NCBI GenBank assembly: GCA_047495785.1
Contig: JBLDXI010000003.1
Span: 4,030,001-4,094,000 of the forward strand
DNA length: 64,000 nt
Direction of reading: 5' to 3'
Source of the DNA: Lepidodermella squamata
Lineage: Eukaryota; Animalia; Gastrotricha
The notes below the pieces were generated by a model that saw only the letters and a list, made by a program, of their open reading frames with translations, did no database searches and was not told the DNA's origin. The position numbers and the translations under genes were made by a program. The first letter of the stretch is position 1. Every line of letters starts with the position of its first letter. Below are positions 40,923 through 42,755 of the stretch, one piece after another.

Positions 40923-42755
40923 TTATTCAGACATTAGTTTATCGAATAGCTTCGGGCTACCAGGCCAAATAAGTGTCAACTCGGCAAGTCGTGACGGCCA
41001 CTGCTTGAAATGCTTCCGGCGCATGTTGCTGTCAAGGTGGCGGAAAAGCGTTGCAGGGAAAACGAGGGCTGCTTCTAGAGCATGGATTTTCATCAAAGCT
41101 TGATAGAATTCTTCCATTAAAGCGGATGCTCGAAATAGTCCTCGATCGGTAGTTGCGAGACCTGAGCAGAGGCTAGGAATGATGTGAAGGGCGACAGGAT
41201 TTAACTCTAAACATGGACGTATCCGGCATGCTTTCGCAAGTAATTCTTCCAAATGGCCCAAGTTTTGTTTTGAAAATTTCTTCGAGGCGGTTATCCTGTC
41301 AGCCGAGAGCTTGATCATGCTGAGAGCGGAAAGATTTGCGGCTGAATCTTTCCGATCCATTTCGCACAGGCGGCATCTGCATTCGAAGCCAAATTTCTCT
41401 CGCAGCGACTTTTCCCTTGTCTGGAAGTCTTCGAAAGGTGTACAGTAGTCCCACAAGAGTTGTTCGCCTTTTCGAACTTTGCGAGTTACGCGGACAAATA
41501 AAAAGCGGCCGATGAAAGTTCGGCAGCAATTTGTGTCTACGCAGCTGTGATTTATATAGCTCGGCATTATCCAAAGTCCACAGCCATAGTTTCCTTTGTT
41601 ATTAGCAATATACGTCTCCATTGAAAGAGAATTGTGGTTGACGATAGCAGCTAGGGTTTCAGCGCCTTCATCCGTAAAGGGATCTCTGCTTTTCGACTTG
41701 ATTTTCGCGCCACAATATAGCTTATAGAACTCCTCGGATATATCTGGTCGAGCGTCCAATTTTTCTATTACCGCTACAAGAAAATCTGCTGACTGACTCT
41801 CATCACACGCAGAGTGAGGCTGAGGGAAATAGTTGAAAGCTCGCTCTGCTATTACCAAAGTCCCAGGTTCAATATCGGTTGTTGCGACTAGGCCTCGCCC
41901 ATAACCATCAATTTCCTCGATTTGAAGCATATTGCTTGCAAAGTAGTTGGCATGGTTGCTCAGCATAGGATCGCTTTTAGCCTCGTCGATCATTTTCATT
42001 TCATCGAAATCTCCAGTAGTTGATTCTTTCAAGCCTCGCTCAGCCTGAGCCAAGAAAAGCTTTTCAAAACCTGGCTTCCCGCAGACGAGTTCGATACATT
42101 CTTGGTATCGATCAAGTTTCATCAGCGAGCTAGCTTTCCGCAATAGAAGCTTTGGATTGCTAGGATCGATTTCCAGCCCTATTTCAGCATCTTTCAAAGC
42201 TTGAATTGGTCGGTCCATTGCAAGGAAAGCCGCTGATTTGTTCACCAAGATTTTTACTATGGCGTCGTTGTCAGAATTTCCAGCTAGCTGTTGAGCTCTT
42301 TCGAAACAGGCTATCGCCAACTCGAATTCACTTGTTTTGTAGAAGCCAACGCCGAGTGAGTTGAAGTTGATTGCATCAATAGATCTATGCCATTCTATTC
42401 CTTCTAGAAATTTGTGATCGTCCGGAAGAATTACGATGTCTCTGGTAGATAGGCTAGCTTTAATAGCCATAGAACTGCCGATAGGTTCGATGCAGGGATT
42501 TAAAATCATCGCTTTGGCCCCAGGCTGGATTTTCTCAAAAAATCGACCTTTTAAATCAGTGATGACCAATCGAAATACGACGTTGCCATTCGCGTCATCA
42601 ACAAGAGTTGCGACTTGAAGAGGCTTGAAAGGATTCCTTGATCGCACTACAACACCAATGAATCTGACAATCAGCGATTTTTGAATAAAACTGAACCCTC
42701 TGGCTTGATAGCCGAGGTTTGCAATGCTCTGCAAGTCGATGCTAGTGCTCTCCAT
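40923..42755 (-). CDS. TPR + SET-domain protein lysine methyltransferase, 610 aa, intronless (copy 1, K353)
   Basis: TPR helices (NSLGVGFYKTSEFELAIACFERA; NKSAAFLAMDRPIQALKDAEIGLEIDPSNPKLLLRKA). SET motifs GYGRGLVA, YINHSC..N and GEQLLWDY; post-SET FECRCRLC. Confidence 0.9.
   Translation of the reverse strand: MESTSIDLQSIANLGYQARGFSFIQKSLIVRFIGVVVRSRNPFKPLQVATLVDDANGNVVFRLVITDLKGRFFEKIQPGAKAMILNPCIEPIGSSMAIKASLSTRDIVILPDDHKFLEGIEWHRSIDAINFNSLGVGFYKTSEFELAIACFERAQQLAGNSDNDAIVKILVNKSAAFLAMDRPIQALKDAEIGLEIDPSNPKLLLRKASSLMKLDRYQECIELVCGKPGFEKLFLAQAERGLKESTTGDFDEMKMIDEAKSDPMLSNHANYFASNMLQIEEIDGYGRGLVATTDIEPGTLVIAERAFNYFPQPHSACDESQSADFLVAVIEKLDARPDISEEFYKLYCGAKIKSKSRDPFTDEGAETLAAIVNHNSLSMETYIANNKGNYGCGLWIMPSYINHSCVDTNCCRTFIGRFLFVRVTRKVRKGEQLLWDYCTPFEDFQTREKSLREKFGFECRCRLCEMDRKDSAANLSALSMIKLSADRITASKKFSKQNLGHLEELLAKACRIRPCLELNPVALHIIPSLCSGLATTDRGLFRASALMEEFYQALMKIHALEAALVFPATLFRHLDSNMRRKHFKQWPSRLAELTLIWPGSPKLFDKLMSE

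Follow-up and report, generated by a model that had tools for sequence, protein, structure and literature searches.

The 64,000-nucleotide stretch examined here, referred to hereafter as the window, covers positions 4,030,001 to 4,094,000 of contig JBLDXI010000003.1 in assembly GCA_047495785.1 of the gastrotrich Lepidodermella squamata. It carries a tandem array of near-identical genes whose product combines an N-terminal OB-fold-like domain, tetratricopeptide repeats (TPRs) and a SET domain (the OB-TPR-SET architecture). The initial annotation had described the first unit as an intronless, domesticated and amplified gene of fungal-type architecture, a candidate for horizontal transfer linked to the metazoan gene Ror. 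The intact reading frame of 610 amino acids on which that description was based is present in the list of open reading frames (ORFs), and the array has the following features.

40923 to 42755, minus strand: coding sequence (CDS) of array unit 1, an intact intronless ORF of 610 amino acids from ATG to stop, with Pfam SET and TPR matches and an AlphaFold model
40623 to 64000, minus strand: tandem array of 2594-2598-bp units, starting at about 40623 and continuing past the end of the window (self-BLAST, tblastn)
Starts at 40923, 43521, 46119, 48713, 51307, 53905 and 60521, minus strand: seven complete CDS copies (ORF list, tblastn)
63115, minus strand: partial eighth CDS copy, truncated at the end of the window (tblastn)

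The array

The proposed amplification was borne out by these seven intact copies and one partial copy, repeated with a period of 2594-2598 bp. Self-BLAST of the window gave 98.7-100% DNA identity between units, and the proteins encoded by the seven intact copies and the partial one were 99.3-100% identical. The substitutions K353E and D7G were the sole differences among the seven complete proteins. Near-identity of this degree implies either very recent amplification or continuing homogenisation. There are at least eight near-identical tandem copies, and the total is probably greater than 14. Tandem Repeats Finder did not detect the array in the window, as the period exceeds the 500-bp limit of the tool, and Rfam models had no match in 39500-64000.

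The stretch is represented in three public runs, each from a different study, which were examined over 38500-44400: X1 (2024, apparently DNA), X2 (2015) and X3 (2014). The amplification is visible in X1 too, and thus outside the window assembly. There the whole unit collapses into one 2624-nt contig with a depth of 463, compared to 65-76 in the flank (about 6-fold), with the caveat that X1 is possibly the assembly's own sample and that its DNA was possibly amplified (PMC11660948). The composition of the array gene showed no anomaly in codon usage or in GC content at third codon positions (GC3), which was 0.45 in the array gene and 0.44-0.66 in host ORFs of the window. Any transfer would consequently be old.

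Architecture of the array protein

The full-length AlphaFold model, built from a 93-sequence alignment, had a mean confidence (pLDDT) of 87.2 and a predicted TM-score (pTM) of 0.85. Five segments were distinguished.

42426 to 42677, minus strand: N-terminal OB-fold-like beta domain, residues ~27-110 (both models, Foldseek, Atlas, family hidden Markov model)
41973 to 42374, minus strand: TPR module, residues ~128-261, with three TPRs and capping helices, eight helices (Pfam TPR_1/TPR_2, model)
41445 to 41927, minus strand: MYND-less SET domain with a helical I-SET insert, residues ~277-437 (Pfam, model)
41364 to 41387, minus strand: post-SET zinc cluster FECRCRLC (C459, C461 and C464, with C405; 93-sequence alignment)
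40929 to 41342, minus strand: C-terminal helical (TPR-like), SMYD-like domain, residues ~472-609 (model, Foldseek)

Pfam recognized SET at residues 286-437 (E 1.6e-12) and TPR_1 at 132-158 (E 3.4e-8). As had been noted initially, the SET domain is not split by a MYND finger: zf-MYND gave no Pfam match up to E 0.1 in the 610-residue protein, and the insert in the SET domain is helical and without a Cys/His cluster, with only two cysteines in residues 310-390. Most of the SET domain was modeled with pLDDT >90. Its elements are all present, namely the GxG motif, the NH(S/x)C pseudoknot motif and the catalytic tyrosine, and the corresponding residues (G286/G288, which bind S-adenosylmethionine, N402-H403-S404-C405 and Y437) are conserved throughout the family, where they are invariant or nearly so. 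C405, C459, C461 and C464 are invariant in the 93-sequence alignment. From its sequence, we predict that the array enzyme is catalytically active.

The motifs and domain order listed in the initial annotation (the N-domain block, G.YD, GRGL.AT.DI..G, GLW..PS..NHSC..N..R.F.G and GF.C.C.LC) matched the family consensus column by column. The N-terminal domain had been called beta-rich, and strands are indeed present in the models. Folded alone it was beta-rich with pLDDT 74.5, and the Foldseek comparison that had been suggested as a check returned only OB folds from the PDB (Teb1, RPA70, Pot1, Stn1 and HIN domains; E ~3e-3, query TM-score (TMq) ~0.55). In an ESM Atlas shape search the domain matched the N-termini of fungal SET proteins (TM 0.66-0.67). 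It aligns end to end with the N-domain of the family, whose consensus reads H.G..LLCRT ... IED..G ... LYN ... IKEPY.K ... R.D.PSD, and is divergent (13-26% identity), with D54 and P87 invariant.

By sequence, the TPR module matched the TPRs of TOM70, RPAP3 and SGT1 in the PDB. The TPRs of Hop, CHIP and TOM70 bind the EEVD tails of Hsp70 and Hsp90 through a carboxylate clamp, for which the rule is K-N-N-K-R at fixed spacing. The family conforms well to this rule (K in 12 of 21, N in 19 of 21, N in 20 of 21, K in 20 of 21 and R in 19 of 21 sequences). The array protein has N132, V136, N172, K202 and R206 at these positions and so retains three of the five, which falls short of an EEVD clamp.

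The solved proteins nearest in sequence were SMYD3, SMYD2 and SMYD1, over the second half of SET and the post-SET segment (SMYD3 E 1e-10). Foldseek aligned full-length human SMYD3, SMYD2 and SMYD1 over about 430 columns, with E values of 5e-11 and above. Like the metazoan SMYD1-3, the array protein has a SET domain split by an I-SET insert, a post-SET zinc cluster (CxCxxC; residues 444-469 in the model, aligning to the SMYD3 post-SET) and a C-terminal helical domain. It differs from them in the missing MYND finger, the extra OB-fold N-domain and the low identity (~14-18%) in structural alignments. SMYD4 also bears N-terminal TPRs (PMC4521844), yet the array protein stands outside the SMYD3/4/5 classes described for animals, the survey of metazoan SMYD proteins does not include the OB-TPR-SET family (PMC4521844), and none of the broadly distributed metazoan SMYD clades holds the array gene, as the initial annotation had supposed. 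Toxoplasma AKMT is likewise a MYND-less, SMYD-like SET protein with a helical C-domain (structural match E 3e-6), but its N-terminal region is different and the match is much weaker than those to SMYD2 and SMYD3. As modeled, the array protein is a MYND-less lysine methyltransferase of the SMYD structural class with an added OB-like N-domain and a three-TPR module.

Membership in the MYND-less TPR-SET family, also part of the initial annotation, agrees with the motifs, the order of TPR and SET and the published definition of the family (PMC2474616). TPRs lie directly upstream of a MYND-less SET domain, a beta domain is present at the N-terminus, and the trees place the protein in the family. 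The proteins of fungi and Arabidopsis share with it TPRs upstream of a MYND-less SET domain related to SET5/6 and SMYD, and the fungal alignment runs over the whole length, including the OB-like N-domain, G.YD, GRGL, NHSC, the catalytic tyrosine and CxCxxC. Fungal proteins were the best named matches, under UniProt-style names such as "methyltransferase FGSG_00040" and "SET domain-containing protein". Unlike them, the array protein is animal-encoded and tandemly amplified, has two of five TPR clamp residues replaced, is at most 36% identical and occupies a long separate branch outside the clade of Dikarya.

Transcription and residency in the animal genome

The array gene is transcribed, and its mRNA was recovered with 99-100% identity from X2 and X3, which are older, independent studies. 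X3 yielded a 1869-nt minus-strand contig running from 42702 to 40850 and ending in 20 non-genomic T, that is, a poly(A) tail that begins 14 nt past the polyadenylation signal. X2 carries the SMART cDNA adaptor and is therefore cDNA. Two features of the transcript were located.

40850 to 40869, minus strand: AATAAA polyadenylation signal (40864-40869) and cleavage site (40850) (sequence; end of X3 contig)
43028 to 43090, minus strand: 63-nt GT..AG spliceosomal intron in an upstream leader or spacer transcript (X2 and X3 contigs)

The joint 43027/43091 omits these 63 nt in one contig each of X2 and X3, and the omitted segment has CT..AC ends on the plus strand. The statement that the gene has no introns therefore held for the CDS but not for the transcript. 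Word depth in X2 was ~1000-2700 across the CDS, compared to ~20 across Ror; because contig depth in this run sums all copies of the array it is only a rough gauge, by which the array gene is probably highly expressed. Upstream of ~42767 (42756-43450) the depth in X2 dropped to ~20-50, and one contig stopped 12 nt ahead of the ATG. The long leader that contains the intron may belong to a minor transcript or to read-through between array units, and either the principal start of transcription or an acceptor for a spliced leader may be located directly at the ATG.

An intronless CDS might suggest that the unit arose by retroposition from a TPR-SET gene with introns in the same genome and was then multiplied into an array. 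Such an origin would account for the missing introns whatever the deeper history of the family, and a retrocopy can acquire a leader intron by taking over an exon upstream of it. Nevertheless, the genome has no A-tract behind the poly(A) site, and the unit is not flanked by a target-site duplication. Long intron-free exons are ordinary in this genome, with an ORF of 1.77 kb in the last exon of Ror and of 1.3-1.6 kb in other host ORFs of the window. Homologues on contigs of other organisms are continuous ORFs too, so that intronlessness is perhaps the usual state of the family. Given host exons of similar length, continuous ORFs in the relatives and a spliced transcript, the intronless CDS carries little weight, and we regard retroposition as improbable.

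The neighbor of the array at its left end is a Ror-type receptor tyrosine kinase gene, as had been stated. Its two ORFs were scanned one by one.

36132 to 39523, plus strand: Ror-type receptor tyrosine kinase gene of at least two exons (Pfam)
36132 to 37568, plus strand: ORF with the Ror Fz (Frizzled-CRD) and Kringle domains (Pfam Fz and Kringle)
37754 to 39523, plus strand: Ror tyrosine-kinase ORF (Pfam PK_Tyr_Ser-Thr)

Beyond Ror, further upstream, are genes for Exo84, RINT1, hydroxyacylglutathione hydrolase and HMG-CoA synthase (HMGCS). The contig around the array is plainly animal, with 40 kb of animal genes on it, and the position beside Ror is confirmed by the Fz-Kringle and kinase ORFs on the same contig.

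Could the array belong to a fungus or protist that shared the culture, with its DNA fused to the Ror contig by chimeric assembly? If the window belongs to the published gastrotrich assembly, its DNA was produced by multiple displacement amplification (MDA) and is prone to chimeras (PMC11660948). Furthermore, no long read spans the junction between Ror and unit 1, and a repeat at ~39980-40341 interrupts the short-read contigs between the left junction of the array and the 3' end of Ror. Against this, a single-copy X1 contig (40319-40673) shares 30 nt with the unit contig and supports the left junction of the array. The mRNA occurs at 99-100% in the two older studies, which bear the same or a related animal label. 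A 63-nt intron, a metazoan-type AATAAA and a host-like GC3 also speak against a chimera, no close fungal or protist match was found (at most 36% identity), and copy-specific variants show that the array is not one read duplicated. Contamination or chimerism is unlikely, and a fusion of culture-derived DNA to the Ror contig we consider very improbable indeed.

The array gene is thus a resident, expressed gene of the animal genome, with a polyadenylated mRNA and a leader spliced by the host. Integration and host-type expression are attested, short of a spanning long read, by the Ror contig, the X1 overlap at the junction, the spliced intron and the poly(A) tail. The gene is domesticated, as had been claimed: it has a spliced leader, an AATAAA signal, a poly(A) tail and a host-like GC3.

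Distribution of the OB-TPR-SET family

Word-index searches with the array protein and with a 21-sequence profile gave few matches, dominated by TPR words, and were replaced by an exhaustive search of 1.84 billion representatives, which gave 3906 matches. The rows examined were picked from the best 150. The top match came from the fungus Ambispora (36% identity, E 8e-43, 163 bits), and the best animal matches scored 120-123 bits. There was no self-match among the 1.84 billion representatives, and hence the animal's own proteins are not in the library.

Members of the family were found in Glomeromycota (Ambispora, Acaulospora and Glomus), in Mucoromycota (Jimgerdemannia) and in the Ascomycota and Basidiomycota (Dikarya), and also in Amoebozoa (Ceratiomyxa and Balamuthia) and plants (Humulus and Adiantum). 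Among animals, they occurred in Tylenchina nematodes (Ditylenchus, Aphelenchus/Aphelenchoides, Panagrolaimus and Acrobeloides), often in many copies each, and in both classes of rotifers (the monogonont Brachionus and the bdelloid Adineta). In Atlas clusters the commonest phylum was Bacillariophyta (diatoms), Streptophyta (plants) or Rotifera. A hidden Markov model of the N-domain matched 115 of the ~180 family proteins collected, including those of plants, Amoebozoa, nematodes and rotifers. No family member from a broadly sampled animal group was seen among the named matches.

The spread over fungi, Amoebozoa, plants and diatoms means that the family is ancient. The OB-TPR-SET architecture is pan-eukaryotic, common in fungi and patchy or rare in animals, where it was found in meiofaunal groups. 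"Fungal-type" is accordingly too narrow a name for it, since the same order of N-domain, TPR and SET occurs in Amoebozoa, plants, Tylenchina nematodes and both rotifer classes. Veerappan et al. (2008) had restricted the TPR-SET family to filamentous fungi and Arabidopsis At1g26760 (PMC2474616). A literature search on the TPR-SET family and on horizontal transfer in gastrotrichs turned up neither functional work nor a previous description of the array gene.

Two side observations were made on the homologues. A rotifer-like gene, P0001 (L001:396-1885), lies 3.4 kb from fragments of a piggyBac-type (DDE_Tnp_1_7) transposase. A subgroup represented by P0016 and P0020 consists of TPR-SET proteins without the OB domain (L003:1247-6506, L004:134-4979, L005:107-5523); these genes adjoin a gene for a 5'-3' exonuclease/family-A DNA polymerase (PolA-type) on compact intron-free contigs from two sources.

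Phylogeny

Four trees were computed, one with FastTree (153 rows), two with careful IQ-TREE searches (52 and 24 rows) and one with a quick IQ-TREE search that had more named taxa (44 rows). Many rows have no taxon names, the rows were hand-picked from the best 150 matches, and the branch of the array protein is very long. It was the longest terminal branch in both careful trees (2.2-2.4 substitutions per site) and among the longest in the other two.

Nematode proteins of the family (P0081, P0031 and P0184-P0186), the Brachionus proteins P0206 and P0211 and the Adineta group (P0073/P0001/P0005) were among the animal sequences. A clade of Dikarya, the Adineta group and the Brachionus group with the nematodes had 96-98% support, and the array protein fell outside it. 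Within this clade, the Adineta group was sister to Ascomycota, and the Brachionus group with the Tylenchina nematodes was sister to Basidiomycota. Approximately unbiased (AU) tests were run on an alignment of 24 rows and 644 columns. Topologies were searched with LG+F+G4 and then compared under both LG+F+G4 and LG+C20+F+G4, for which p values are given in that order. "Array" stands for the array protein.

Array + nematodes: 0.005, 0.0015; rejected
Array + Adineta group: 0.0025, 0.0004; rejected
All animals in one clade: 0.0002, 0.005; rejected
Array + plants: 0.007, 0.004; rejected
Array + Ascomycota: 0.009, 0.034; rejected
Nematodes + Adineta group: 0.004, 0.006; rejected
Array + Amoebozoa: 0.59, 0.52; not rejected
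Array + Mucoromycota: 0.47, 0.49; not rejected
Array + Glomeromycota: 0.26, 0.55; not rejected
Array + (Adineta group + Ascomycota): 0.10, 0.08; not rejected

By these trees and tests, the animal copies of OB-TPR-SET do not form one clade. The nematode and rotifer genes resemble the array gene in their three-part architecture, their occurrence in small invertebrates and their frequent multiplicity, but they are not its orthologues, as they belong to the 96-98% clade with Dikarya and the AU tests reject joining them to it. They look like separate fungus-to-animal transfers, followed in nematodes by multi-copy expansion, and since they nest within Dikarya the signal of transfer is clearer for them than for the gastrotrich gene.

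Origin of the array gene

The single most likely history of the array gene, to which we give about an even chance, appears to be an old transfer from a non-animal eukaryote, because the gene lies outside all other animal copies and its best matches are non-animal. The gastrotrich lineage would have acquired the gene long ago, independently of the nematode and rotifer copies, from a source outside Dikarya of early-diverging-fungus or amoebozoan grade, and the gene would then have adapted fully to its host. Horizontal transfer is plausible and unproven. The either/or wording of the initial annotation, "foreign-origin or patchily retained", stands; its headline of fungal-type transfer is not established, as the gene nests in no donor clade.

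Several results weigh against a transfer. The array protein falls within the diversity of the family at a basal polytomy rather than inside a donor clade, and in the 44-row tree its sister groups were weakly supported and consisted of sequences without taxon names. The alien index and phylogeny proposed initially as checks gave a divided answer: the tests on trees excluded the other animals (AU p ≤0.005, although rejection is possibly exaggerated because most constrained trees came from fast searches), but the index, computed from the E values and scores of the exhaustive search, was ~28-30 with a bit-score gap of ~40, which is in the indeterminate range, and three non-animal placements were equally acceptable. 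Published thresholds make an index of this size suggestive, not decisive. GC3 in the array gene (0.45) is within the host range (0.44-0.66). The lack of close animal relatives means little, since the proteome of this animal, and probably those of its relatives, are absent from the libraries. Finally, a gene inherited vertically in an opisthokont would likewise be expected to fall among early fungi and Amoebozoa.

Such descent is a serious, if less probable, alternative. The family would date back to the ancestor of Amorphea or of Opisthokonta, the gastrotrich gene would be a fast-evolving survivor of a family lost by nearly all animals, and the nematode and rotifer copies would be different paralogues or separate transfers. 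The ancient spread of the family over fungi, Amoebozoa, plants and diatoms agrees with this, as do the host-type structure and composition of the array gene throughout and its position at the base, where Amoebozoa, Mucoromycota and Glomeromycota are all AU-compatible and where the animal lineage would fall. That the searched libraries have no gastrotrich proteomes, as the missing self-match indicates, also favors it. On the other hand, descent requires that the gene was lost independently in many metazoan lineages. Among the best 150 of the 3906 matches, the array protein grouped with no named holozoan sequence and with none from another animal, and the other animal members nest in Dikarya, apart from it.

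A broader possibility, which we put forward tentatively and consider doubtful, is that the family entered small stress-tolerant invertebrates at least three to four times from a fungus or protist and then multiplied, a convergent domestication perhaps acting on chaperones or abundant non-histone proteins. The separate entries would be into Tylenchina nematodes with Brachionus, into bdelloid rotifers and into the gastrotrich.

Proposed function and significance

As in SMYD enzymes, a lysine would be bound in a cleft formed by the SET, post-SET and C-terminal domains. Recruitment or selection of the substrate would fall to the OB and TPR modules, and SET would methylate a lysine on it. The intact clamp in the family as a whole suggests docking on the tails of Hsp70 or Hsp90; for the array copy, whose clamp is degenerate, a different partner is no less likely. 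Having many copies in an array would increase the dosage of the enzyme. We know of no demonstration of a methylation substrate for any OB-TPR-SET enzyme.

The array gene adds a new animal member to a family already known but functionally unstudied. Compared to the 2008 view of filamentous fungi (PMC2474616), the OB-TPR-SET architecture is shown here to be pan-eukaryotic, of the SMYD structural class and patchy in meiofaunal animals. If the transfers are real, this would be a recurrently captured eukaryote-to-animal gene, by a route rarer and less documented than bacterial transfer, and the gastrotrich array, near-identical and probably highly expressed, would suit study of the role of the enzyme. 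If the gene is instead a relic, opisthokonts ancestrally had a methyltransferase of this kind that almost all animals lost.

Repeats around the array

One spacer of the array is interrupted by an insertion.

56251 to 60276, strand not assigned: 4.0-kb insertion in one array spacer (self-BLAST)

It lies upstream of the copy at 53905-55737 and has perfect 1255-nt inverted terminal arms of ~190-nt subrepeats around a 1516-nt center without a long ORF. This structure resembles that of a foldback-type transposon. Its arms are not made of array sequence, which makes a palindrome formed by amplification the less likely reading.

The repeat at ~39980-40341, between the 3' end of Ror and the array, resembles a miniature inverted-repeat transposable element, with 12-nt inverted ends CAGCGGTTCTCA / TGAGAACCGCTG. 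Its word depth in X1 (500-950, compared to ~70 in the flanks) identifies it as a dispersed repeat. Over the last exon of Ror (38500-39500), X1 gave paired contigs per site, one identical to the window and one 3-5% different, which suggests two diverged haplotypes or strains in the sample.

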